From: Dimorphilus gyrociliatus
Lineage: Eukaryota; Animalia; Annelida
Direction of reading: 5' to 3'
DNA length: 64,000 nt
Assembly (NCBI GenBank): GCA_904063045.1
Contig: CAJFCJ010000008.1
Location: 1,116,001 to 1,180,000, forward strand
Of this stretch, positions 3,147 through 60,477 are shown in pieces. A program made the translations under genes and the position numbers. The stretch's first letter is position 1. Each line of letters begins with the position of its first letter. The notes below the pieces were generated by a model. That model was given only the letters and a program-made list of their open reading frames with translations. It had not been told where the DNA came from and ran no database searches.

Positions 3147-6001
3147 ATGACCTCTTTTCTGAAAAAGAGTCTTCCTTTCATTACCTCGTTTACTGGAGGA
3201 TTGATATTCTACAAAATATATAGTTTTATTAAAAATAAACGATTTGTTTCATTTATTGGTAAAGCAGTTTTCATTACGGGATGCGATACAGGGTTTGGTT
3301 ACTTATTAACCAAACAACTTGCAAAGATGGGCATCTTTGTCTTTGCTTCTTGCTATACGGATGCTGGTAAAAGAAAATTGGAAGAGGAATCTTTACCAGC
3401 TGTTATCCCAATTAAGGTGGATGTTAGAAATACTGCAACTATACAAGAGGCCTTTGAGATCGTATTGGCAACTGTCGAAGAAAAAGATTTAAGTAAGTAG
3501 TAGGACAGGATATTGTATAAATTATTGTTTAGTTAGGCCTATTCGAACCCTCTTTAAGTCTATTATAGCAATATTTGTAACTTGGTTACTAGGATTTAAC
3601 GGTAAACAAGTGTCAATCTTTGCCGAGAAATGACAAAGAATGGTGAAGTGTGCTCTTTCTGTGGTCAAGATGATAGAGAGGTAATTAGGATACTCGAATG
3701 TGGCCATCGTACTTGTCAGGATTGCTCGAAAACTCTAATAAGTATCGATAAGAGTGATGTTGTTATTTGCAAACTTTGCGTTGAGTCAGAGCAAGCTGAG
3801 GATGTAAATATAAATGTCGAATACATTAATCCCTTAAGAGCAAAAAGAGATAGGGAGGAAAAAGAGAAAGAAAAAGAAAATGAAAAAGAAAATGAAAAAG
3901 AGAAAGAAAAGAAAAGAGAAGACGAAGAACAAGAAAAAGAAAAGGAAAAAGAAAAAGAAAAGAAGGATAGAAAAGAAACAGAAAAACTGACCGAAAAACA
4001 AGAGGAAAAGAAAGAAAGCTTTAAAGAAATCGTCACTAAAGAGCAAGATAAAATTGAGAATAGTCAGGAAAGTCAGAAAGAAAACACTATTGAAATCGAT
4101 AAAGAAAATCCTAAGAGAAATGAAAGAAAAAAGAGTAGTTCTTCTGAATCAAGTTCAAGTAGTTCATCTTCTGACGATGAAGAGGAAGACAATGATCAAA
4201 GAAATTTATGCTCAGAATTAGTAGAAGAAATTGAGTTATCGAAGAATCAAATAATGGGTCTAACCTCTCTTCCGGATGAAGAAGGATTAATCTTAGTAAC
4301 AGATTCTGATATCGTATTATTGGATCTGACAGGAAAGGAAATTCATAAATTTCATTACCTAATTAATCACTCATACACTGGTGGTTTATGCCTATCTGAA
4401 GACGGAAATAGAATTCTTGTGGGTTTATCGAGTCCAAAATATACAGGTGTTGCATTTTACGAAAGAACAGGGAAATTTCGATATTCAGCTTTCATTAAAC
4501 ATCCGGGAGTCATAACAGCCGTTCAAACTTTTGATGACGGCCTAATAATATTAGATAGAGAGAAGAAAAGTATTTATCACCTAAATTCAGAGAAGAGAAT
4601 CATGGAAGAATTTCCCGGAGATAGGCGCCATCTAGCTGATTTGGTTCACTTAGCAATTGATTACCAATATCGTTTCTTAATCTTAGATCGACGTAATTGC
4701 ACAATCGAATGTATGAATGAGAAGGGTAAAGTTTTATTTAGCTTCGGTAGCCCTGAAAATCTCAATAATCCAATAAAAATATTAGCGGCTGAAGAAGATT
4801 TAATCTTAGTATTGGGGACGAATAAAATAACAGCTTTCAATTACGAAGGTCGATTTATCACCAATATATATCAGACTAAAACTCATGAATTTGTAGATTT
4901 TTGTAAATTGGCACCAAAGTTAATTGCCATACTAAGAAAAGATGGAAAAATAATTAAGATACGATATAATATCATGTACCAAAATTTTCGGAATACTGCA
5001 ATAAAAAGGAAGACAAATGGCAAAAAAGGACAAATAAATTCAACGAATAATCAATTAACTTTTACTCAAAAGAGTACATGCTGTTGTATATCTTAAAAAT
5101 GAAATAGAAATTTGTATACTAGGCCTAATTTAGTAATAATAAAAAAAATACTTATAGTTATTTGTTCTTTGTATGTGTTTTTTATACAGTTTTCTGGGCT
5201 ATTGTAAATAACGCTGGCGTTTCCACCGTTAATTCGCCGTTTGAATTCTATACGAGAGATGATTACGAAAATGTTTTCAATATAAACGTTTTCGGTATAG
5301 CCGAAGTCTCTAGAATATTCTTGCCTCTTTTGAAAATTTCACAAGGAAGAATAATAAATACAACAAGTGCTTCTGGTTTTCTTCCGCTACCTTCGGCAGC
5401 CGTTTACTCAACTAGCAAATACGCTGCCGAAGCTCTATCGGATATTATGAGGTTGAGATTAACAATAATATCGTTATCATCTATAGCAGCTAATTTAAAT
5501 AATTTGTCTAAATATAGAATAGAGGCAAGAAGATGGGGAATAAAGGTGTCCAAAATTCAACCTGGTCTTTTTAAAACGGATTGCCATAATTATGAACGTA
5601 TGAAAACACTTCGAAATAGACAATGGTCCCGTTTACCAGAAGCTATTCGATTAGAATACGGAAATAAGTTTTCGTATAGTTGTAAGTACTTTCTAAGATA
5701 GATTCCAAACGTATTTGCGGTTTTCTAATACTACATACTTATTTTTAAATTAGCTCTCAATATAGCTGAAAAGCAAATCGATACGAGAGCTTCGACTAAT
5801 TTACAATTAGTTATTGATGCCTACTTGAACGCTCTCTTCTCTATTCAACCCCATACCTCTTACATTATTGGATCGGATGCAAAATGGGTATTCTATCCTC
5901 TCTCATTTGTTCCACATTGCTTAAGGGATGTTATATTGAGTTTCATTAGTGCTCCTTTATTAAATAGGAGAAAATGGAATTTTAAAAAGAGAAAGAACTA
6001 A
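3147..6001 (+). CDS. Short-chain dehydrogenase/reductase, RDH/HSD17B6/BDH1-like (SDR9C-type); exons 3147-3492, 5190-5451, 5518-5681, 5754-6001
   Basis: Cofactor motif VFITGCDTGFG, NNAG, catalytic YSTSK, WGIKVSKIQPGLFKT, and C-terminal VIDAYLNAL...P..SYIIGSDAK. All four exons join in frame at GT-AG sites. Confidence 0.92.
3630..5096 (+). CDS. Intronless RING (C3HC4) + charged/Ser-rich linker + NHL-like beta-propeller protein (TRIM-NHL-like E3 ligase candidate), nested in SDR intron 1
   Basis: 488-aa ATG-to-stop ORF in about 70% AT DNA. Contains CSFC-x12-CGH-x2-C-x2-C-x14-CKLC, an E/K-rich coil, a poly-Ser/acidic patch and about six NHL-like repeats (e.g. HLAIDYQYRFLILDRRNCTIECMNEKGKVLFSFG, LNNPIKI). 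Ends in STCCCIS. Confidence 0.85.
   Translation: MTKNGEVCSFCGQDDREVIRILECGHRTCQDCSKTLISIDKSDVVICKLCVESEQAEDVNINVEYINPLRAKRDREEKEKEKENEKENEKEKEKKREDEEQEKEKEKEKEKKDRKETEKLTEKQEEKKESFKEIVTKEQDKIENSQESQKENTIEIDKENPKRNERKKSSSSESSSSSSSSDDEEEDNDQRNLCSELVEEIELSKNQIMGLTSLPDEEGLILVTDSDIVLLDLTGKEIHKFHYLINHSYTGGLCLSEDGNRILVGLSSPKYTGVAFYERTGKFRYSAFIKHPGVITAVQTFDDGLIILDREKKSIYHLNSEKRIMEEFPGDRRHLADLVHLAIDYQYRFLILDRRNCTIECMNEKGKVLFSFGSPENLNNPIKILAAEEDLILVLGTNKITAFNYEGRFITNIYQTKTHEFVDFCKLAPKLIAILRKDGKIIKIRYNIMYQNFRNTAIKRKTNGKKGQINSTNNQLTFTQKSTCCCIS
5138..5143 (+). terminator. Candidate polyadenylation signal (AATAAA) of the nested RING-NHL gene
   Basis: AATAAA 42 nt after the stop at 5096 and about 46 nt before the SDR exon-2 acceptor. 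AATAAA is frequent in AT-rich DNA, so this is weak evidence. Confidence 0.35.
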
Positions 6002-6740: not shown

Positions 6741-9099
6741 TTATCTTTTAATATCCAAGTTACTTGATTCGTTTATATTTTGATTGGATTTTATTGTTTC
6801 GCTGTCATTAGATTTGATATCATTGTATAGAGTTGTGTTAATAATGGAAGCTTGCGAAACTCCGGCGGTCGTTGTACACGGACTTACAGATGAGCTGGAG
6901 CTTCTATCAAATATATTTTTCTTGAATAGGCAACACCAATTTGACTTTTGTACGTTTTCCATTACATAATTCTCACTTAGTTCTGTTATTACTGATCTCC
7001 TCTTATGAAATTTCAATTGGAAATTATCCATAACACCCGCGTCTTTTCTCCTTTGTTGACGCTCTAATAATATATTACGTATTCTCATATAATTATGAAA
7101 GTGATTAAAATTCGAAGCAATTATAGGAATGGGTAATCCTGTTGCTAGGATACCACATATAGCACAAAGCGCACCAATTAAGTAACCTTGACTAGTGTTT
7201 GGCACAATATCACCATAGCCAACCGTTGTCATGGTTATTATGCACCACCAGAATCCAATTGGTATTGAAGTCACTTCGGATTTATCGTCTTCAAATTCGA
7301 AAAAGTATAAAAGAGTAGAAAAGACAAGCATACCCATGAAAATGAGCAAAAATAGTAAAACAAGTTCTTCTGCCGACTTTTTAAGAGCTAATTGCAATAA
7401 TTTAAGTCCTTTATGATGTCTGGCCATCTTTAGTAATCTGAATACTCGAAGTACACTGGCCACAAATAAGTAAGCTAATAAGGCAACGTAGGTGTTTGTT
7501 TTTAGTGAGAAGAATCTCCTCCATACGAACAAGCCCATCATCGGGAATACAGAGAGAATGTCTATAATATTCATAACTGATACGAAGAAACGTTTCTTAT
7601 TGGGGCAAACAGAAAATCTTATAACTAATTCGAAAAAGAAGAGAATAATACAACTTCCATCTGTATACAACAGAGCTGGATGACTATCCGTTGCAATTAA
7701 CATTCTCTTTTTTGGGTTTGTTTCATTAGCAACATCTGGAATTGATCCACTTCGTAGGGTTCTAAATTTTGGTACCGTTTCCATACATACAATAGCGATA
7801 GAAACTAATATCATTATGAAGTAAAATACAGCCCATAACTGAAAGAAAGAACGTAACATTTAAAATAGAATACTCAAAGTATAAGTTCACCTACATACCA
7901 TATATATAAATATGGAAGTATATGCTAATCTATATACAGTATATTATATATTGTTCTATAGCTAGTTTATTGGTATCTTATACGTAAAATACCGTTGAAC
8001 ACTCCTTACATATTAAATAAAATAATCTTTGCCACATAAGCAATAAACTTGTTTGAACGAGGGAAGAAAAGGACAGTATATACCGCTGATGAGTAAGAAG
8101 AAAGTTCATAAAAAATGTTCTTATATTATTGGAAAGTGGAACACTTAATTTGAATTAATACAATATATGGAATATTGTATTTATACTATTTAAAAATAAT
8201 ATACGGTTGTTCATATTACAAGTTCAGTATTATTTGAAAAGCCGATAAAATTGGAACAAATAGGTTGGTGGAAATATAATCAAATTGCAGTTTATTCATT
8301 CATATTTTTCGTATTTATATGATATATTAGGCTTAAAATTAAATTAAGAATATAATTAATTAAGAATCTATGACGTGTATTTTTTAATAATATAGAAGAA
8401 CTTCTTATGCAAATATTTGAATTGGTGTAAGTTGTACGGGGGTCCTTTAAGGGGCTTGATAATCAAAGAATAGTTAATATTTTAATATCTTGAAAGCTCA
8501 ATTACCAAATAGGCAAAGATTATTTACATATCTGAATCAGATTTCTTGAATGAATGAAAGTTGTGGATTTTTTTTCAAAGTGAAACGAAGGGCAGGGTAA
8601 ACTCAAGTAATGAATAAGATTAAAAAGAACTTATTGAGTTACTTACGCGAGCAGCTGCTGATGAATTGGGCTTTTCTAAGAATCTCCATAATCTATGCCT
8701 GAAGGAAAACTTTTCTTGTGGTGTATAACTTCCCTTTTCTGAATGAGATAGTGTTTTGTCTAGGATTTTTAAAGTTTCTTGTTCTTTGTCCCAATCTTTA
8801 TAGGCATTATAGCAGCAACTGGCAATGCAATGTTCTTCAATTTTCCAAAATAATAGTTCGGCTTTTATAGAGGATCCACATAAACAATGACTAAAATGCA
8901 ATTCACCAGATCTATAATAATCTAGTATAGATGAAAATAAATCTGGATTCCTATCAAAAAAGAATTCGTTTGTATCCTCGTTATAATTTGAATTGTCTTT
9001 CTGCAACGAAGACAATAATGAATTAGGAACAGATCTTAAAGTGCTCGCAAAAGTTTGAAATTTTCTCCCACCAACATTCAATTTTACTATTTCCTCCAT
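6741..9099 (-). CDS. Voltage-gated potassium channel alpha subunit, Shaw/Kv3-like (non-Shaker); exons 9099-8647 and 7838-6741, about 516 aa
   Basis: T1/BTB domain (KLNVGGRKF, EFFFDRNP, YYRSGELH) with the HX5CX20CC Zn motif of Shab/Shaw/Shal channels; S1-S6; pore TMTTVGYGD; S6 GLPIPIIASNF. Phase-0 intron CGC|GTAAGT ... TTTCAG|TTA. Confidence 0.93.
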
Positions 9100-9992
9100 T
9101 GCACTTAAACTAAGATTGAGATTTTAATAATTATGTTCAATATTCCCGAGTGAATCGCGCAATTTATAGCTGTATTAATCCGATTATTTCCTTTCTAAAT
9201 CTTGAGCATAAGAGTATCATAATACTCACACAAGTCCGCGGCAATTTTTCATTTTCTTTTTCTACTAATTTCTTTTGTCAATCAAGTTTTTTCAAGATTT
9301 TTGTTATCTATCTTTACTTTTCATTTATATAAATAAATTGAGATATATAGAAATATATAATAAATGTCTATGAAATAGTATATAACGCTATAATCTATGT
9401 CATATATATTTTTAACAACCAAACTAGTAGCAAGGTGAAATCCGTACTTCTTTATGATTCTGTAGTACACAACACTTTACTATTGAATAAAATGGGTAAT
9501 GGTCGACAACGGAAATTTAAATAACAACTCGTTGGGTTATATGGCAGAATTGTTAGTCCTATAAAACGGCCAATCAATTGAATAATCAATAATTGTAGTA
9601 ATAGATGAATAGAATGAGACGTTAGGTAAAATATTTTTTTCAGTTTTTAAGCGGTTAATAACCTTTTTGAAAGCTAAAAAAACACTGAAAATAGTATTTC
9701 AATCTTTATTTCTTTCTTTTTTTTGTTTTTTATAAAAAAAAATTGCATAAACTTTTAAACAAACTTTGAGAAGTTCGATTTGATATTGAATTAATTTTTC
9801 TTATTTTAATATAAATATTCAAAACTACTGAATAAATATTTTATTTAAATATTTGTCCTTTCTAAATTTTTGTCTATGGTTACTTGGCTTTGTATCTAAT
9901 GCTTGCCTAATTTTGAATAGTATGAACAGTATGTATTCCAATATATATATTTAAAAAGTCGTGTCGCAAATAGGGAATAAAATGTTGCTTAT

Positions 9993-11305
9993 TCACGATA
10001 GACAAAGTGAAATAAGTGAAAAGATAAGAATTAAGCTAGCGAGTAATTTATTATTGATTGTTGACGTAATTGCAGACGACTTCATAGTGGACGTTTCCTG
10101 AGGCGTTTCCGCTAAATAAAGAAAAAAAGTAAGAGTGAATGGTAATCAATAGTAGAGTTGAACGAAAAGTAAAGAACAACTGTTCTTCAACAGTCGGTAA
10201 CAGTCATTATTCGAATGAATCATTATGAGACATACCGCAAGTGAATTGTATACTCACTAGCTCTTGCTGTTGTTTCTTGAACTGTTAGAAATATATACAG
10301 TGCACGATATTCTTCAAATTTTCTTTTTAATACTCACTATATGAATCGCATGTCGAGGGAATGTCGTCAACGTTATCATTACATAAATCCTCCTTACAGT
10401 AGCAAAATTCATCCCTACCTCCTGTTAACGGTTGAGTGGCACATGATACCTTGTGAGCTTGCCAATCTTCAGTAAATGGTGAACATCCTCTATTAATTTC
10501 CTGAATGTCGTCTATTTCATAGTTTAATTTGCAACCTCGTTAATTATTCAACCTAATAAATCTATTATATTTATTACCCCCTTTCATAATCCGTCTAATA
10601 AAACATGAATCACAATTTTCAATAGCATCTTCAGCCGGAATCGTAAAATTATCACCATAACCACACTTTGGATTGAATGGACCTGAGGTTTGACCTTTTT
10701 TCCAAAAGCATTGATAGCATTTTACGGTTGTTGCCTCCTTATTCCGGTTCACTTCCTCAATTTGTAGGTTATTTGTCGTTGTTGTTGTATCGCAGACATT
10801 CGCTATATTACTATTATCCTTATTACAATAGTCGTTCTCACAATAGCAAAATTCTCTATGACCACCAACAAGTGGCTCGTGAGAACAATAATTTGCTTCT
10901 TTTTCCCATTCCTCATTTCCAAGATCAGTGATGCATCTTCGAACGATTTCATTTACTCTATCTAAAAATAGTATGTCAAATATCTTATACGGTTTAATTT
11001 AAAAAGTCTTTTATTTGTTTTTTAAGAGAAGGACTTACCGTCTTTTCTTAGTATACCCAAAGCACATTTTTCGCAGTTTGTCCCTACCGAAACATCACTC
11101 TGATTTTGTGGAATTGTAAATTCATTATCCCATCCACATCTCGCATCTCCAGTTGTATAATCGGCGTACCAATCGCAAGCAAAACAATTTATGCATTTAA
11201 CAATTTCAGCTGAAAAGAATCCAAATATTTTATTTATTAATATTAAAAATTGTAATGCAGACTCTTCAAAACAAATATAAGTAGAAATGTTAAAAATCTA
11301 AACAT
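9993..11305 (-). CDS. GPI-anchored two-domain Ly6/uPAR (three-finger, quiver-like) protein; 6 coding exons
   Basis: Signal peptide MFRFLTFLLIFVLK (11305-11263); two Cys-rich domains (CFACDW...RCGW...NCEKC...RRC...C...FCYC...YCN; CYQCFWKKG...KCGY...NCDSC...RGC...C...FCYC...LCN); a 24-nt mini-exon; hydrophobic C-terminus KLLASLILIFSLISLCLS-stop. Confidence 0.82.
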
Positions 11306-12889
11306 TGCTGGAAAATGGTTGTTGTTCAACAGAGTTCTCATGATTTTGAAGGAGTTGATAAAGTAATCATAAAGATGTCTAGTCTTCAGAGACAATACTA
11401 TCTAAAAGTGATGGTGCTTAAATTTATTTACCATTACAAAAAGTATAAAATAGATAACATATAAAATTAGGAGTATTATTGCATATAATAAAATAATTCT
11501 ATTATAAGAATATTAAAAATCATTGTTATAAACGAATTCTAATCAATAAAAGACAATTTTCGAATTTCATTTATTTGAACTTGACGTGACGGATGGCACT
11601 TGGTACATAAAACAAGAACACTTAATCCTCTAATCATTCACTTATAATATTTTCCTTTTACATTTTTATTTTTAAATTTAGGAATAGAAAAGTTGCCAAC
11701 ATAAAACAGAAAACAGTAATTAGTAAGCTATTGGTAAGTAGCTCCATCTTGCATATATCCTTCATTTATATAATATTTACAGTCTTAATGCTAGTATTAT
11801 CGCCTCTAAATTATTATTGTATTTAAAAGGATTATCTAGAGTTATAGAAACAAATAAAACAGAAGAGATACCAAAATGATACAAATGGCCGTCTATGAAA
11901 ACGTTACATGTTGTAATTGATAAATTTAACGAATTCAGCATTTTAAACTTAAGTACACTCTTAGAAATATGCTTAAAACTGCTGTTGTTATTTTAACAAT
12001 ATCAATTATCAATCACAATGATCTTATTTATTAGTAATCTTTTAATTGTTCATTAGCAATATAATACAAAATAAAACACATTCTATTCGTTGTTTTTTTG
12101 ATGGAACCTTAAAAAATGATTCTATTTTTTTATGGTATTTTATATAGAATAATAACAAAGCAAGTAGTAAAAACATGATAAATTTGCCTTTTATTTGCAT
12201 ATAGACCAACTCTATTTCGATGTAGAGAGCAAATTAGAGAATAGGATTTTTTATGTGTGTATTTGATTATTTTATTCTAATAGCTTTTTTTCAGCCTCCC
12301 CTCTCCTGCCCTCCTCCCCTTCCTACCTCTCTCCGTTAACGTCATCTTTCTATTTTATTATAATTAAGGAAATCAACTACAGTCTTTCAATATGATTTCT
12401 CTGTTTCTAGGTTGCTAGACAACATCAACAATCGCAATTGTTATCAAAAGAAATTGTCTATATTAATTGAATAAATTCATAAATTTATATATACTGTATA
12501 TATATATATATATATAAAGTATATAGTATATGTATTTATAGATACATGTATGTACAACTATAGGTGATTATTGAATTCTTTATATGAAAACTTTATCTAT
12601 AGAATAAAAGAATATTCATAGAGGCGGTTATTCAACTTGTTAAATTGTTAAATAAAGCTTAATAAATGGATTAAAATGGTCATAACATCCTTTAAAGTAA
12701 AAAAAAGGAAAATAAGTATAATGAAAAATTAATATCCTAATTGTTTTTATGATTGTTTAAATATTTTTATGTAAAAAGTTTATAGAGGAAAAATATTGAG
12801 AAGTCGTATAAAATCAAAGAAAGAAAAATCACGAATTAATGGACAAGTTTATTATATTAAATAAGGTTAAAAGTCCATATTTCTTTTCA

Positions 12890-15800
12890 TCATACTAAAT
12901 AAGCCAAAACCATAGAAATGGAAAGGAAAAGAAATGATGCTGATGTAGTAGCTCCGCCCCCTGTATATTTTTAAAGAAAAATTAACATTAAGTCATTTTA
13001 TAAGAGAGCAAGACGTTAGAAATGTAAATAGGATAAAAAGAATTTGATTTTAACCTGTTGTTGGTACGGTTACTGTTGTTTGTTTTGTTGTTGCTTTTGT
13101 TGTTTGTGTTGTTTGTTTTGTTGTTGCTTTTGTTGTTTGTGTTGTTTGTTTTGTTATTGCTTTTGTCGTTTGTGTTGTGTGTTTTGTTGTTGCTTTTGTC
13201 ATTAAAGACAAATTAACATTAAATCATTTAATAAGAGAGCAAGACGTTAAAAATGTAAATAAGATAAAATGAATATGATTTCAACCTGTTGTTATTGGTA
13301 TGGTTACTGTTGTTTGTTTTGTTGCTGCTTCTGTCGTTTGTGTTGTTTGTTTTGTTGTTGCTTTTGTTGTTTGTGTTGTTTGTTTTGTTATTGCTTTTGT
13401 CGTTTGTGTTGTGTGTTTTGTTGTTGCTTTTGTCATTAAAGACAAATTAACATTAAATCATTTAATAAGAGAGCAAGACGCTAAAAATGTAAATAAGATA
13501 AAAAGAATTTGATTTTAACCTGTTGTTGTAGGTACGGTTACTGTTGTTTGTTTTGTTGTTGCTTTTGTTGTTTGTGTCGTTCGTTTTGTTGTTGTTGGTG
13601 CTTGTGTTGCAGGAACTTCAGGAATGGAACATGCATTGGGTACATTAGTTATATCTCTGTTACATAGATTGTCTTTGCAATGACAAAATTTCTCATTGCC
13701 TTGAGAATAAGTCATGTCAGAACAGGCTGGAACATGGGCTTGCCAAGCACGATTTCCTCTAGGATCCGTTACGCAAGTTCTGTAGATTTGTTCAGGTTCT
13801 CCTACAGATTTAAAAAAATTCCATTTTTAAATGAGTAAGGATGAATTTGATACCTACCATTTTTGAAGATAACATTCAAGTGACAAGTATCACAGTTAGA
13901 GACTGCATCGCTATCTGGTACTGTAAAGCCAGAACCCCAGCCACATCTTGTGTCGAATGGAGGATTGGATTCTCCTCTTTTCCAGAAGCATTCGAAACAG
14001 TTAACGCTCGCTTTTTCTTGTACTATTGATAAAGAATGAAACAAAAGTAGTAACATAGTATTAACTGTTTATGTACTCGAGCATACCAAACGGACTCTGT
14101 TGTGGTGTATGAACTGCATCGCAAACGTTTGGAATATCTTCTTCTTTCTCGTTACAAAAGTCGTCTTTGCAATAACAATACTCATGTCTACCTCCTAGCA
14201 AAGGATCATACACACATTTAGTATCATACATTTCCCAATCGTCCAATCCTTGTACACAGAAGCGATCAACACTCACCGGCTTATCTTTATTCATAAAAAA
14301 GAAGCAATAAAGTATTAGCATTTTAATTCACGGGCGTAATATTGCTCTAGTTTTCTAACTACTCACCATAATGATAGGTAACAAAGTGTGTGCATTGCAA
14401 ACAATTTTCTACTACAGATCGGTCGTTAACATCCTTAGGTACCGAAAAAGCGCTACCATATCCGCAACGAGAGTCAGTTGTTGTTATACCATCTTCACTC
14501 CAAGAACAGTGAAAGCAAGTTTTACCCGATACCACTGGTGGACTAGTTGGCTTAGGTAAGCTACAAACATGCGGTATTCCATCTGTTTTTTCGTTACAAA
14601 GGTTACTCTCGCAGAAGCAACTTTTCGAATTTTTTCCTGAAATTACTGGTTGTTCTGAGCAATGTTCAATAGGCTCTCTCCATTCATTAGAGCCCGTAAT
14701 ATCATTCACACAAGTTCTTGAAACAGTTTCAACAGCATCTATTAATATTGGGAAGGTAGATTATTAAAATATTTAATTGATAAATTATTCGAGCAAAACA
14801 AACTTCCGACGTAAGTTATAGCAATTTGACATAAACCACAGTTATATTTTATGTTTTCAGGATCTGATTGAAAATCTACGCCATATCCGCATTTAGGATC
14901 GTACGGTGGAGATGAAACTCCCCTCTTCCAAAAGCATTGATGACAACTGACACCAGCTTTTGGACTTTCATTCGCTGTATGAATATTCAAATTTTATGAA
15001 TTTATAATATCACTATTAAAAGAAAAACTAACTAAAATCAATTGATTGGGGAAATTCTCTGGGTGAATCGCAATACTGACGAATATTAGTATTGTTAATG
15101 TTACAAAAACTTGAATCACAAAAGCAGTATTCATTTCTTCCACCACTCAAAAGGTCATATGAACATTGAGTATCTAAGTTGCTCCAATCCTCTGATGAAT
15201 CGGTCAAACATGCTCTATTAATTGAATCAGGTTCATCTGAGATGTGAAAACAATTTATTTATTACAATTATTTATTATATAGCTATTGACTGTCTTATAA
15301 ACCTCCTTTAAAAGTAATTAGCAGTCCGCATTTTATACAATTTTTCTCTACTGCCGGATGACTATCCAAAGCTGGTATCTTGAAATTTTCACCCCAACCG
15401 CAGTCCGGATTGTGGAGGCCATTTCCATCACTAGACCAAGAGCATTGGAAGCAAGAGTATGTAACTGGAGGAGGTTGTGTAGGTGGCTGAACGTCACAGG
15501 CGTCGGGTATGCCATCCTTTTTTTCATTACAATGGTCTTGCGTACAATGACAGTTTTCATAGGCTCCTCCATTGGTTGGTTGAACAGAGCAGGATGCAAC
15601 ATTTTCTCTCCATTCATTCAATCCAACGATATCTCTGATACAAGTCCTTCTTATCTCTTCGATTGTGCCTATGAAAAATTGTGAAAATATAACAATTTTC
15701 TTTTCTCTTTAAAATAGATTGTTTACCATCACTTCGCTTTGTCATTTCCAAGCGACAAACTCCGCAATTATCCTTTGCGGACGATATATCCATATTAAAA

Positions 15801-18800
15801 TCGGATCCATACCCGCAATTTGGATCATAAGGAGCATTAGTTTGGCCTCTTTTCCAGAAACATTCATAACATTTGATATTTACTTCGCTTTCAACTTAAA
15901 AATTGAATTCAAAGTATAGAATGGCATTTTTTTTATTAACTAGGACAAAAAATAACCTACCTAGTAGAGGTACAGGATCGTAGCTAGTCTGACTATCACA
16001 AACACTTGAAATATTTTGGTCATTTCTGTTGCAGTAACTTCCTTCGCAGAAACAGAATTCATGCTTTCCACCTTTAAGAGGATCGTGGGAACAGGTATTT
16101 TCGTAAACTAGCCAGTCTTCAGCAAACTCAGTAATGCAATATCTTGTTATGTCCACTGCATCCTCTGTTAAAAGGAAATAATGTTTATGATACGTTTAAG
16201 TGAGAAAATCATGAAATTTTTATTCTTACGTCCTCTATACGTAATCTGAAATCCACATTTTAAGCAATCCTTCTCAACTGATGCATCATTAATGCTTTCT
16301 GGCACTGAAAAATCTCCTCCCCAACCACATCTTGAGTCATGTAGCCCATCAGGTGAGTTACTCCAAGAACAAGCGAAGCAGTTATAAGTCATTTTCGGAG
16401 GTATAGTTGGAATTGTAACATTACATGCATCAGGTAGATTAGTAGGCAAGACATTGCAAAAATCTGTATCACAGTAGCAAAATTTATTGACGGCTCCTCT
16501 TAACGGTTGCTCCGAGCAAGATGGAATATGTTCTTGCCATTTGTTTTTTTCAGATAGATCGGATAGACAAGTTCTTTGAATTACTTCGGGAAAATCTGAA
16601 ATATTCATTGCGTTAGATTATGTTAAATCATTAGTGTAATAAATAACGACACTGTTCCTGAGAACAACAGCAACATGGCACATTCCACAATTGTCTTTGG
16701 CTTCTGATTCGGTCATATTGAATTCAGGCCCATAACCGCATCTCGGTTCAAAAGGGGCATTAACTTCTCCTCTTTTCCAGAAACATTCATAGCATTTTAC
16801 AGCAGCTTTAGTAGTAGATCTTAAAACTATTTAGAAGCACGCACTGATTTATGGTTGAATGACTCAAGATATTATTACCTAGTGGAGCTTCGGGTGGACT
16901 AAAAGGTGTATCACATACATTTGGAATATAGGCATCATGATGATTGCAGAAATCTCCCTCACAGAAGCAATACTGATGTTTACCTCCTTTTAGAGGATCA
17001 AAACCGCAATTATTTTCGTGTCTTTCCCAATCACTTTCCAGTTCTTGAACGCATCCTCTTACTATATCGACAGCTTGGGCTAAAACAGGAAAAATCGATT
17101 AAAAGTGAACAAGACCTTTTGATATTTATGATTGCTTACATCCTCTGAATGTAACCATTAGAACGCATTGAAAGCAATTATTAAGAACGGCACCATCAGC
17201 AGTGTTATTAGTAATGGTAAAACCTGAGCCGTAGCCACATCTTGGATCAATTAAACTATCTGGATTATCGTTCCACACACATTGAAAACAACTGTAAGTT
17301 GGGGGAGGTGGAACAGTAGGCACTTCAACATCGCACATGTCTGGAATATTACCCTTCTCTTTATTACATAAGTTAGAATCACAATAACAAAATTCGTGTC
17401 TTCCTCCGTCTATGAGTTGAATAGAGCATCCTGGTAAGTGTTCGCGCCATTCGCTTTCACCATCGATATCCCTTATACATGTTCTGTGAATTTCTTCAAT
17501 GGTACCTAAAATTTGTTTTAATTTCGAAAATATGTATTAAATTTAACATATTTATTTATCGTTCTTGATAAACTCACTTCCTCTATAAGTTGTAGATAAG
17601 TGGCATACTCCACATTCAGTTTTAGCTTCACCATCGGGTACTGTGAAGTCGTTTCCACATCTACCGTCGTAAGGACTTTGATTATTTCCTCTTTTCCAAA
17701 AACATTCGAAGCAACTGATAAGATTCTCTTGCGATTTAGATGCTATAAAAATAATACAAAATTAATAATAATCTCCTCAAAACTATTCATTATGTTGAAA
17801 ACGTTTGTTTTACTTGATATAAGCGGAAAATCGGGTGCAACGAAAGGTGTAGCACAGACACTTGGGATGTTTATGTTGTTTTCATTACAATAGTTTCCTT
17901 CACAGAAACAATATTCATCCTTTCCTCCTTTTAAAACATCATATGAACATTTGTTGTGTGGATATTCCCAATTATCTCCTAGATCAGTGGCGCAAAATCT
18001 AGTTATATCATAAGCCTCACCTATAAATTCATAGTGAAATATTAAAAACTATATAAATGAGAGATTTTATGCCAAACCTCCTTTAAAAGTAACTGAGAGA
18101 CCACATTTAAGGCAATCTTTAAATACTGATGGATCGTTTGGGGACTGAGGAACATTAAAACCTGGTCCCCATCCACATCTATCGTCATTCAATCCACCTG
18201 GTACTGAACTCCATGAGCAGGAAAAGCAATTATAAGTAACTGGTGGTTCTGGATATAAATTTAAAAAACAGCATTAATATAATTACGATGAAAATTACTG
18301 AAACTAACGTATTGGTATGGGATCACAAGCTGATTGAATATCAGTGTTATTTTTATTACATATGTCTGTATTACAATAACAATGCTCTTCTTCTCCACCA
18401 AAGAGAGGTTGTTTAGCGCAGGCTGTTGCGTGATTTTGCCATTTATTATAACTTCCTGCCAATCCTAAACAGGCTCTTTGAACTTCCACAACTTGATCTA
18501 ATTTTCAATAATCAGAATATTATTTAATCAAATGGTCATATTTCTGAGATAGTTTACCTCCTTTTTTGACAATTCCTAAGTAACACGTTCCACAATCAGT
18601 TGTTGCTTCGTTATCAGGAACAGCAAAATCATTTCCTAATTTACATCTTACATCCCCGATATCTCCAATTTTCCAATTGCACGAAAAACATTTTGCAAGA
18701 GCCTTTGGTTCATTTTTGATTGCTAGAGGAGGAGCTAGAAAAAATAAAAAGTTATTAAAAAGATATCAAAGTAAAAGAATGTTATACTGACATTGAGTCG

Positions 18801-20336
18801 GATGATCATCACAAACATTTGGCAAAGTTTCTTTTTTCTCATTACAAAAGTTTCCTTCACACACACAAAATTCCCGTTTTCCACCTTGTAGAGGTTCGGC
18901 TGAGCACGTATTATTGGGATAAGCCCATTTTTCGTCCCCCAATTCTGCTTTTCCTAAGCATATTCTTACAACTTCAAAAACTTCTTCTGCAAAAAGAAAT
19001 AATATATCAATGGAGGGAAATCGAAATTAGTAAGTACACGCTTACCGTCTCTATAAGTTAAGGATAGACCGCACTTAAGGCAGCCTCCGGCCACACCACT
19101 ATCTCCTGTTTTATTAGGAACTGTAAAGTCGTCTCCATAGCGACATCTTTCGTCGCTTGGAATTTCCATGTGCCAGTCGCATCTATAACAATCATAAGTT
19201 GGAAGAGGTGGATCAGTAGCTAAAAAATAATTTAAAAATTCTATAAACGAAAATTGAAAATTTAATTTGCGAAGCTCACGTGGAATAGTGGGATTTGTAC
19301 AAGCATTTGGAAGACTATCACTTTGTTCATCATTACAATTTTCGGTGTTGCAATAACAAAATTTATTATCTCCACCGGCTATTTTTTGTTCTGTACAAGA
19401 TGGAACATGATTTTGCCAGTAGTTTTTACCGATTAGTGGGCCGTAGCATATCCTGGAGACTGCAACAACTCTGGCTAAAAAGATTCACTTGTTACTTTAA
19501 AAGCAAGAGTTGATCCTAGAAAAAACTTACAATCATTGAAAACTCTGTGAATTCCGCAAGATCCACAGCCAGGTGACACATGACTAGCGTTTAATTTGAA
19601 ATCGGAACCCCATCCGCAATTTGGATCGTAATTAGGTCCAGTCTCACCCTCCTTCCAGTTACAGTTATAACAAGAGATCTCATTGGCTTTGCTAGCATCT
19701 TCCTCTGGCCCTTATATCATTATTAAAAGGTAAATATCTAGTTGATGAGGAGACAGTTTATACTACCTGTAAGAGCTAAATTTGGGGGACATTCAAGATC
19801 TATATTGTCATCATTTTTATTGCAGTATCCTCCTTCACAAAAACAAAATAGACGTTCTCCACCATAGAGAGGTTCCCTGACACAGTTGTTTTGTGGGTGC
19901 TCCCAACTTTCTAATTCATTTATGCACATTCGAATGACTTCTTGAACTTCGCCTATAAGAATTATAATTTTAGGAAAACGGGAAAAGATACAAATAACAA
20001 AGAAAGAGGAAAAAATTAAAAGTTTTACCATCTTTTTTAGTGAAGGCAATGCCACATTTCTGGCAATTTTCCTGTACAGAATTATCACTTGGTTCTTCTG
20101 GCACGTTAAAATCTGAACCCCAGCCACATCTTGGATCATCGTTTGGAATATCTTTTTGCCATTCACAATGAAAGCATGTGTTCTGACAATTCAAGTCTAA
20201 CAAAAAGAAAATATAAAGTAGAACAAACTTTATAAATCTTGAAAAACAATTAAAAAATTAAGAATAATTAAAAAAAAACAAAAAACAAACTTTTCAGTAA
20301 AACTACGAAAACTACTAGATTAAGTAGTAACTTCAT
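12890..20336 (-). CDS. Giant GPI-anchored protein with 14 tandem Ly6/uPAR (quiver-like) domains and a Thr-rich stalk; about 26 coding exons, roughly 1800 aa (my estimate)
   Basis: Signal exon MKLLLNLVVFVVLLK (20336-20291). Fourteen repeats of CxxCxW...RCG.G..F...CxxC / R.C...W...C...P..GG...CxC....CN...C traced exon by exon from 20196 to about 13620. Thr-rich TTK/TTQ segment ends at 13520. Last exon 12960-12890 reads GGATTSASFLFLSISMVLAYLV-stop, a GPI-type signal. Confidence 0.85.
12970..13580. repeat. Tandem duplication of about 231-234 bp (intron piece + Thr-rich exon end), roughly 2.6 copies, with an internal 33-bp unit (TTKATTKQTTQ on the minus strand)
   Basis: TTAAAGA(C/A)AAATTAACATTAA...TAAGAGAGCAAGACG recurs at about 12971, 13202 and 13436, each copy followed by (TGT/TTT)-rich 33-mers. 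Confidence 0.9.
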
Positions 20337-60066: not shown

Positions 60067-60477
60067 CTAATTTCCACCTGTTCTATTCTTTAGCAATCTT
60101 TGCTGCTGACTGCAATTCTTAGAATAACTATCTAGGCTAGTAGTAGCCATGCTATGGCCTTGATTAATTGCCGTGTGAGAATTGCGTAACCATACCACAG
60201 TTCCTCGGCTTCCCTCTAATCCCCTATCGTATTGTACGCATGGTAGCCATCTAAATATAAATTTAAAACCAGCTCGAAATCTTGCGTTCATATAACAGTA
60301 GACTAAGGGATTGTACATTGAATTACTCATAGCTAACCAAAATATGATTAGATAAATTTCTTGAATATGGGGATGGCTATTAATGTTATTATTTATGTTG
60401 ATGAGTATAAAATAAAGATGTTGCGGTAGCCAGCATATACCAAATATAATTACAATGATTATCATCATCTTAACAAT
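60067..60477 (-). CDS. Tachykinin-receptor-like class A GPCR, terminal exon (TM6-TM7-tail); upstream exons not found in the window
   Basis: TTTGTAG acceptor, then IVKMMIIIVIIFGICWLPQHLYF and FWLAMSNSMYNPLVYCYMNARFRAGF, characteristic of TACR/TkR-family receptors. Confidence 0.85.
   Translation of the reverse strand: MVKMMIIIVIIFGICWLPQHLYFILININNNINSHPHIQEIYLIIFWLAMSNSMYNPLVYCYMNARFRAGFKFIFRWLPCVQYDRGLEGSRGTVVWLRNSHTAINQGHSMATTSLDSYSKNCSQQQRLLKNRTGGN

Follow-up and report, generated by a model that had tools for sequence, protein, structure and literature searches.

The stretch analysed here, hereafter the window, comprises 64,000 nucleotides (nt) from the genome of the minute marine annelid Dimorphilus gyrociliatus (GCA_904063045.1), with window position 1 corresponding to position 1116001 of record CAJFCJ010000008.1. 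Its minus strand carries one gene, which starts with an ATG at 20336 and ends with a stop codon at 12890, and whose product is a chain of 14 Cys-rich domains flanked by a signal peptide at one end and by a Thr-rich stalk and a glycosylphosphatidylinositol (GPI)-type tail at the other. Six-frame translation revealed a regular series of Cys-rich open pieces on this strand, and exon chaining resulted in 28 coding exons with a coding sequence of 5640 nt, corresponding to 1879 amino acids (aa). The 27 introns are all of the GT-AG class, all in phase 1 and 52–94 nt long, sizes that are consistent with a compact genome. All internal exons have lengths divisible by three, and no exon is interrupted by a stop codon. 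The final exon chain was set by hand from the phase-1 rule and the homology of the repeats, and the donor of exon 23 is ambiguous (14087 or 14066). With all 27 introns in phase 1, the loss of any exon or exon pair would leave the reading frame intact.

The public record is identical to the window DNA over 15,096 of 15,096 bases (0 mismatches), and its annotation places a single gene here, with its 3′ end at 12890 and a product of 1877 aa carrying the precomputed mark ‘QVR (weak)’. Our independently derived model of 1879 aa differs from this product by two residues. The annotation of D. gyrociliatus was generated with EvidenceModeler, in which transcript assemblies were weighted tenfold over ab initio models (PMC7854359). 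Among sequencing runs, an RNA run (a coral metatranscriptome) contains 31% of the 31-letter words that were sampled from it, and a small run from 2017 of unstated kind contains 63%, a value to be compared with the 64.7% expected from the spliced exons alone. The word content of these runs fits a spliced transcript, without proving one. The 14-domain array is one real gene. Its protein is already public but unnamed, and the new part is its reading, not its sequence. An earlier sequence-only reading of this DNA had described a signal peptide, 14 domains, a Thr-rich stalk and a GPI-type tail joined in one gene through about 26 short exons. The gene model, hydropathy and annotation bear out this composition and the joining of its parts, and the exon number is revised to 28.

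Exon 1 (20291..20336, minus strand, as are all the following exons) contains the start codon and the signal peptide (hydrophobic aa 1–18). The first five domains each occupy two exons: domain 1 (odd type, exons 2–3, 19767..20196), domain 2 (even type, exons 4–5, 19280..19710), domain 3 (odd, exons 6–7, 18792..19219), domain 4 (even, exons 8–9, 18309..18734) and domain 5 (odd, exons 10–11, 17814..18248). Beyond this point, four fused exons (13, 16, 19 and 22) each encode the C-terminal half of an even domain and the N-terminal half of the odd domain that follows. Domain 6 (even, 17312..17742) is composed of exon 12 and the first part of exon 13, and domain 7 (odd, 16879..17311) of the rest of exon 13 and exon 14. 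Exon 15 and the first part of exon 16 encode domain 8 (even, 16402..16826), while the rest of exon 16 and exon 17 encode domain 9 (odd, 15961..16401). In the same way, domain 10 (even, 15475..15894) is formed by exon 18 and the first part of exon 19, domain 11 (odd, 15033..15474) by the rest of exon 19 and exon 20, domain 12 (even, 14542..14974) by exon 21 and the first part of exon 22, and domain 13 (odd, 14087..14541, ending at one of the two possible donors) by the rest of exon 22 and exon 23. The last domain, domain 14 (even, 13611..14022), is encoded by exon 24 and the first part of exon 25. The remaining part of exon 25 together with exons 26 and 27 encodes the stalk (13055..13610), and the last exon (12890..12960) encodes small residues (G, A, T and S), a 15-residue hydrophobic end and the stop codon, a composition and hydropathy profile of the GPI-attachment type.

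The 14 domains fall into two alternating types and together form seven odd/even pairs. In a maximum-likelihood tree, the odd and even domains constitute two clades with 100/100 support. The sequence identity is 31–60% among odd domains and 30–54% among even domains, and 26–42% between the two types. The domains are connected by Pro-rich linkers, which are 12–16 residues long after even domains and 19–23 residues long after odd domains. An intron located between the fifth and the sixth Cys divides each domain into an N-terminal and a C-terminal half. The two halves have a common order of landmarks (Cys, Trp, Cys, Gly-Gly or Gly-Trp-Gly, and Phe), and MAFFT repeatedly aligned one half on the other (alignments A2 and A5). 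This common order may be due to chance or may be a trace of internal duplication.

Every domain contains exactly 11 Cys residues, arranged in the same order in 14 of 14 cases: C-x2-C, C, C-x2-C, C, C, C-x-C-x4-C-N and a final C. The span from the first Cys (C1) to the eleventh is 102–107 aa. The eleventh Cys is located about ten residues past the C-N motif in every domain (for example at aa 126, 252 and 375), and is kept both in the orthologue from a related species and in the paralogues described below. In addition, domain 1 bears an extra Cys three residues before C1, at aa 19, which brings the total to 155. Because this total is odd, at least one Cys must be free or linked to another molecule.

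Hydropathy analysis identified two hydrophobic stretches in the 1879-aa protein, aa 1–18 and aa 1862–1879. These are the only ones and lie one at each end, a distribution that fits a single signal peptide and a single GPI-type tail, without internal starts. The stalk comprises 121 aa, 51% of which are Thr, in keeping with a mucin-like segment. At the DNA level, a stalk exon together with its intron forms a 234-bp tandem unit present in 2.7 copies that are 93% alike, so the stalk exons are near-identical copies, unlike the individually distinct domains. The duplication of the stalk unit is, judged from this identity, far more recent than the duplications of the domains. As a consequence of this recent repetition, the copy number of the stalk unit may vary between individuals, or may be collapsed in the assembly.

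The domains are assigned to a family by their Cys pattern, by profile matches and by structural comparison. All 14 domains possess the ten canonical Cys and the C-N ending of the Ly6/uPAR (LU) superfamily, Pfam clan uPAR_Ly6_toxin, and the protein has the quiver-type combination of a signal peptide with a predicted C-terminal GPI-attachment signal, whose tail is preceded by small residues. For the 14-domain gene, exon-sized pieces were scanned against Pfam QVR (PF17064), which has a gathering score of 27.3 bits. All seven of the submitted C-terminal half-domains match positions 47–86 of the profile, with E-values of 3e-5 to 0.035 and scores of 15.5–25.3 bits. These include the C-terminal halves of domain 7 (E 3.3e-5, 25.3 bits) and domain 5 (E 9.5e-4). 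Moreover, in the paralogue DgyrCDS7088, one domain covers the full profile (1–86) and scores 36.1 bits, above the cut-off of 27.3. An exhaustive profile search through 1.84 billion proteins returned 11 matches only, namely DgyrCDS7088 (514 aa), nine exon-sized open reading frames of raw assemblies, several of them corresponding to exons in the orthologue of the gene, and one rotifer protein. The latter (P0010), a long profile match, was rejected as a relative, being an unrelated Sushi protein; an alignment headed by it returned only rotifer Sushi-domain proteins. Homologue searches with exon 13 found only the corresponding exon of the orthologue, and those with the domain of the paralogue found nothing.

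The fold was modelled with AlphaFold for the domain of DgyrCDS7088, using an alignment (A6) of 64 rows, 50 of which are half-domains of the 14-domain gene and its orthologue. Two other MAFFT alignments were rejected, because the halves were superposed (A2) or the tails shifted (A5), and an alignment of C-terminal halves only (A3) gave a poor model with a predicted local distance difference test score (pLDDT) of 54. The accepted model is composed of seven strands and has a pLDDT of 83.8 and a predicted template modelling score of 0.76. Among the best 50 matches in a Foldseek search of the PDB, all are three-finger proteins, with a probability of 0.9–1.0 for most of the top rows, and in VIA-align every row is likewise a three-finger protein, with Z-scores of 5.4–7.0 over 64–100 residues. 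The matched structures include GPIHBP1, uPAR, C4.4A, TEX101, CD177, Lynx1/2, Lypd6 and the ectodomains of TGF-beta, activin and BMP receptors. The nearest shapes in the ESM Atlas are arthropod QVR clusters, with TM-scores of 0.53–0.59. In the PDB, a sequence search with one domain gave no match, and a profile search gave BMPR2 as its best match with an E-value of 0.13. Although each structural score is modest on its own, all of them point to the same fold, in accordance with the sequence profile. The evidence supports the assignment of the domains as quiver-type three-finger modules of the Ly6/uPAR family, in line with the sequence-only reading, and no other fold emerged.

A collinear orthologue of the gene was recovered on contigs assembled from five runs of a related species (SRR23372216, 228, 229, 231 and SRR31984834). 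The array is divided between two contigs within domain 12: domains 1–11 and the first half of domain 12 are found on L002, and the other half of domain 12 with domains 13 and 14 on L005, so that all 14 domains are present in the same order. The best match of 27 of the 28 half-domains lies at the collinear position, and in the tree 13 of the 14 domains group with the orthologous domain of the same position. Per domain, the identity to the positional orthologue is 55–72%, compared with 42–60% to any paralogous domain in the window; the most conserved piece is the C-terminal half of domain 2, with 82.5% identity. Over the 1625 codons compared, the amino-acid identity is 63%, the proportion of synonymous differences (pS) is 0.756, which is saturated, and the proportion of nonsynonymous differences (pN) is 0.23. 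All of the aligned Cys residues (154/154) are conserved, and the extra Cys before C1 was not seen in domain 1 of the orthologue. The fused exons 13, 16, 19 and 22 are common to both species. At the junction between domains 5 and 6, the window has a 71-nt intron (17743–17813), whereas the corresponding region of the relative (L002 3496–3906) reads through with a sensible linker, indicating gain or loss of an intron between the species.

The collinear orthologue, the saturated pS, the pN of 0.23 and the retention of the Cys residues together indicate that the array is old, is under purifying selection and has not been homogenised. The preservation of 14 collinear domains and of 154 of 154 Cys residues also argues that the array is neither a chance pattern nor an assembly artefact. 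At the level of the compared sequences, each of the 14 positions is shown to have its own identity, which is kept in the related species.

Two paralogues of the gene are found on the same contig. The first is located at about 9996–11341 of the window, on the minus strand, 1.5 kb downstream of the 14-domain gene. It encodes one odd and one even domain with their own signal peptide, a short Ser/Thr stretch, a GPI-type tail and a stop codon, and the same phase-1 intron divides each of its domains. Like its counterpart in the large protein, domain 1 of this paralogue carries an extra Cys ahead of C1. The second paralogue, DgyrCDS7088 (CAD5118377.1; public model L001 6001–8542), lies about 200 kb away. 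The paralogues share with the 14-domain gene the odd/even pair, the phase-1 intron that splits each domain, the eleventh Cys and the GPI-type tails, whereas the two-domain gene differs from the large one in containing one pair instead of seven.

Both paralogues have public models that seem to be partly in error. That of DgyrCDS7088 has no signal peptide and two domains cut at their ends. In the DNA, the C-terminal halves are complete, and another piece of a domain is located upstream at L001 4973–5113. For the two-domain paralogue, the public product of 751 aa merges it with the gene that directly follows on the minus strand (window 6741–11341, corresponding to L010 13112–17712). This second gene (6741–9099) encodes a voltage-gated potassium (Kv) channel, with a T1/BTB_2 exon at 8620–9099 and a six-helix pore exon at 6741–7859. 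Among proteins of solved structure, those most closely related to it are Kv1.3 and Kv1.2 (E 3e-58) and Shaker (E 1e-49), and the margin of the Kv1 assignment is modest, at about 200 bits compared with 168 bits for Kv3 and Kv2. Presuming that the exon of the GPI-type tail is skipped, the merged product would have the normally cytoplasmic T1 domain behind a secreted part without an intervening membrane helix, and for this reason the merge is probably a read-through or a prediction artefact. Elsewhere in the window, an intronless gene for a RING-finger protein of 488 aa (3630–5096, plus strand) is identical to its public annotation, and the terminal part of a receptor of the rhodopsin family (7tm_1, E 5e-10) is located at 60067–60468 on the minus strand.

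A comparison with known members places the worm protein closest to Quiver/Sleepless and the insect QVR family (PF17064), with which it shares the domain family as judged from the profile matches, the Cys order with its C-x-C-x4-C-N ending and the combination of a signal peptide and a GPI-type tail. Quiver/Sleepless is described as a single-LU-domain protein (PMC6600238), whereas the worm protein is distinguished by 14 domains of two alternating types, a long Thr-rich stalk and an eleventh Cys after the C-N motif. Drosophila Boudin, Coiled, Crooked and Crimpled are likewise invertebrate GPI-linked Ly6 proteins with 10–12 Cys, and differ in being single-domain; they are septate-junction proteins that organise surface complexes and are not toxins (PMC3058042; PMC6600238). 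The ectodomains of the type II receptors for TGF-beta, activin and BMP have the same three-finger fold and are among the top Foldseek rows, and their Cys cluster followed by C-N is similar to the C-terminal motif of the worm domains. Those receptors, however, have a single such domain, behind which come a transmembrane helix and a Ser/Thr kinase, and the worm protein, which contains neither a kinase nor an internal membrane helix, falls outside their family.

Among the mammalian GPI-anchored proteins with several LU domains, uPAR has three, CD177 four, and C4.4A, Haldisin and TEX101 two, and none is known to have more than four. Like the worm protein, whose anchoring is predicted, these are GPI-anchored chains of LU domains in which each added domain has its own exons, and domains of uPAR, C4.4A, TEX101 and CD177 are among the best structural matches (Z 5.8–6.8). 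No relationship to them was detected at the sequence level in the PDB search with one domain. Moreover, the first domain of the mammalian multi-LU proteins always lacks the 7–8 disulfide (PMC6600238), whereas domain 1 of the worm protein, with the full set of ten canonical Cys found in all 14 domains, retains the seventh and eighth Cys and on this account is not of the uPAR/C4.4A multi-LU type. Most LU proteins are single-domain, the multi-domain exceptions being uPAR, C4.4A, Haldisin and zebrafish two-domain proteins (PMC6600238), which agrees with the earlier notion that an array of 14 is unusual. In a 2026 survey of 387 invertebrate genomes, including those of five annelids, such proteins are classed as ‘LU’ and long arrays are not mentioned (PMC13719153). 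The literature search found nothing on Ly6 proteins in Dimorphilus and no confirmed account of a Ly6/uPAR array of similar length; a single review sentence that gives Drosophila proteins ‘from 2 to 44 LU domains’ could not be verified and is suspected to be a slip.

These observations show the protein to be a secreted, GPI-type-tailed chain of 14 three-finger modules, and we consider it reasonably probable that it works as a long, membrane-tethered binding scaffold with many sites. In such an arrangement, the Thr-rich stalk, presumably O-glycosylated and extended, would lift the chain off the membrane, and the Pro-rich linkers would hold the modules apart, so that the protein would project from the outer leaflet of the membrane as a long rod. 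Each module, or each odd/even pair, would bind a conserved endogenous partner, which may be a membrane receptor or channel or a component of the surface or matrix, and the partners would be organised or clustered along the extended rod. The odd/even pair would be the likely unit. This mode would differ from the single-site modulation performed by one-domain Ly6 proteins. The individual conservation of the positions and the alternation of two domain types argue for an ordered multi-site scaffold, and against a spacer or a variable recognition molecule.

Several points weigh against this picture. The single half-domains score under the Pfam QVR cut-off, each piece covering half a domain, and no Pfam match was obtained for an N-terminal half scanned alone or for the N-terminal parts of the four fused exons. 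The structural model was built for a domain of the paralogue, as no native domain of the 14-domain gene is contiguous in the DNA, and its comparison with solved structures gave weak Foldseek E-values (0.014 or worse) and VIA Z-scores below 8. In addition, the eleventh Cys leaves each domain with an odd number of Cys residues. The splice junctions and the single continuous transcript are predicted from the DNA, GPI anchoring and O-glycosylation of the stalk are predicted from composition only, and the scaffold mechanism is one that we infer from architecture and conservation.

A different role is suggested by the functions of related proteins. Quiver/Sleepless stimulates Shaker and antagonises a nicotinic receptor (PMC6600238), and the domains described here are assigned to the QVR family. 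The 14-domain protein could accordingly be a tethered ‘prototoxin’ array, in which the modules bind Shaker-type Kv channels or nicotinic receptors in cis and the chain gangs several channels or tunes them. The order of genes at the locus is compatible with this idea, since the two-domain paralogue lies 1.5 kb downstream on the same strand and is directly followed by the Kv gene with its Kv1/Shaker relatives. This adjacency is, however, the only evidence, the Kv1 assignment has the modest margin given above, and in a compact genome of 74 Mb neighbouring positions may be due to chance. Furthermore, 14 domains on a stalk of about 120 residues would reach far above the outer face of a channel, unlike the one-domain modulators, and we regard this role as distinctly unlikely. 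Still more speculative, and clearly improbable, is an extension that takes the odd/even pair as the functional building block of a ‘quiver-Kv module’ specific to worms. In this case, the neighbouring Shaker-type channel would be the partner of the two-domain paralogue, the 14-domain protein, as a concatemer of seven such pairs, would gather several channels or receptors on a single tether, and neighbouring eleventh Cys residues would form inter-domain disulfides that stiffen the rod. The mucin-like stalk and the rigid Pro-rich linkers may also point to a component of a surface coat or matrix, possibly shed, that would bind glycans, chitin-like polymers or mucus and cross-link the coat of the epidermis or the cilia. 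A precedent is offered by Retroactive, a Ly6 protein of Drosophila that organises chitin. We consider such a role unlikely, though not negligible, given the clear C-terminal GPI-type signal and the individual conservation of the positions in place of homogenisation, an unusual feature in a pure spacer or cross-linker; a carbohydrate-binding motif was not identified in the protein.

The sequence-only reading had also considered a channel and a pathogen-binding rod. The former is unsupported, as the protein has no membrane-spanning segment beyond its two terminal signals. An immune rod with multivalent variable modules that bind microbes would suit the multivalent, Cys-rich extracellular architecture and the strong divergence of the domains from each other (26–60% identity). 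It is nevertheless very improbable, because the number and order of the domains are fixed between two species with saturated synonymous sites, and because every domain has a one-to-one orthologue, with a pN of 0.23 and no Cys lost, a state opposite to the pattern of an arms race. This strict domain orthology and the purifying selection disfavour pathogen recognition. The array might finally be a product of the gene model, in which several small Ly6 genes, or a decaying array, were wrongly joined. The splice junctions are predicted ones, and the public 751-aa model that fuses the neighbouring two-domain QVR gene with the Kv channel demonstrates that merging errors occur at this locus. The 14-domain gene, by contrast, has a single signal peptide and a single tail with no internal hydrophobic starts, phase 1 in all 27 introns and no stop in any exon, and both its exon boundaries and all of its Cys residues are conserved in the orthologue, which makes an artefact of this kind extremely improbable.

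The public models around the 14-domain gene are in need of curation, as one neighbour is fused to a Kv channel and the other paralogue has truncated domains. The adjacency of quiver-like and Kv genes is notable in view of Quiver/Sleepless being a known partner of Shaker in flies, and may be a matter of chance. Ly6/uPAR three-finger domains rank with the most versatile small binding modules of animals, with roles that range from toxins and channel modulators to fertilisation factors and receptors. Nearly all knowledge of them derives from proteins with one to four domains, whereas the protein described here contains 14. The three-finger module is evidently also usable as a long ordered array, composed of seven odd/even pairs in which each position is individually conserved between species. 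Moreover, the presence of a one-pair gene and a seven-pair gene in one small genome provides a natural series for asking what role tandem LU pairs play.

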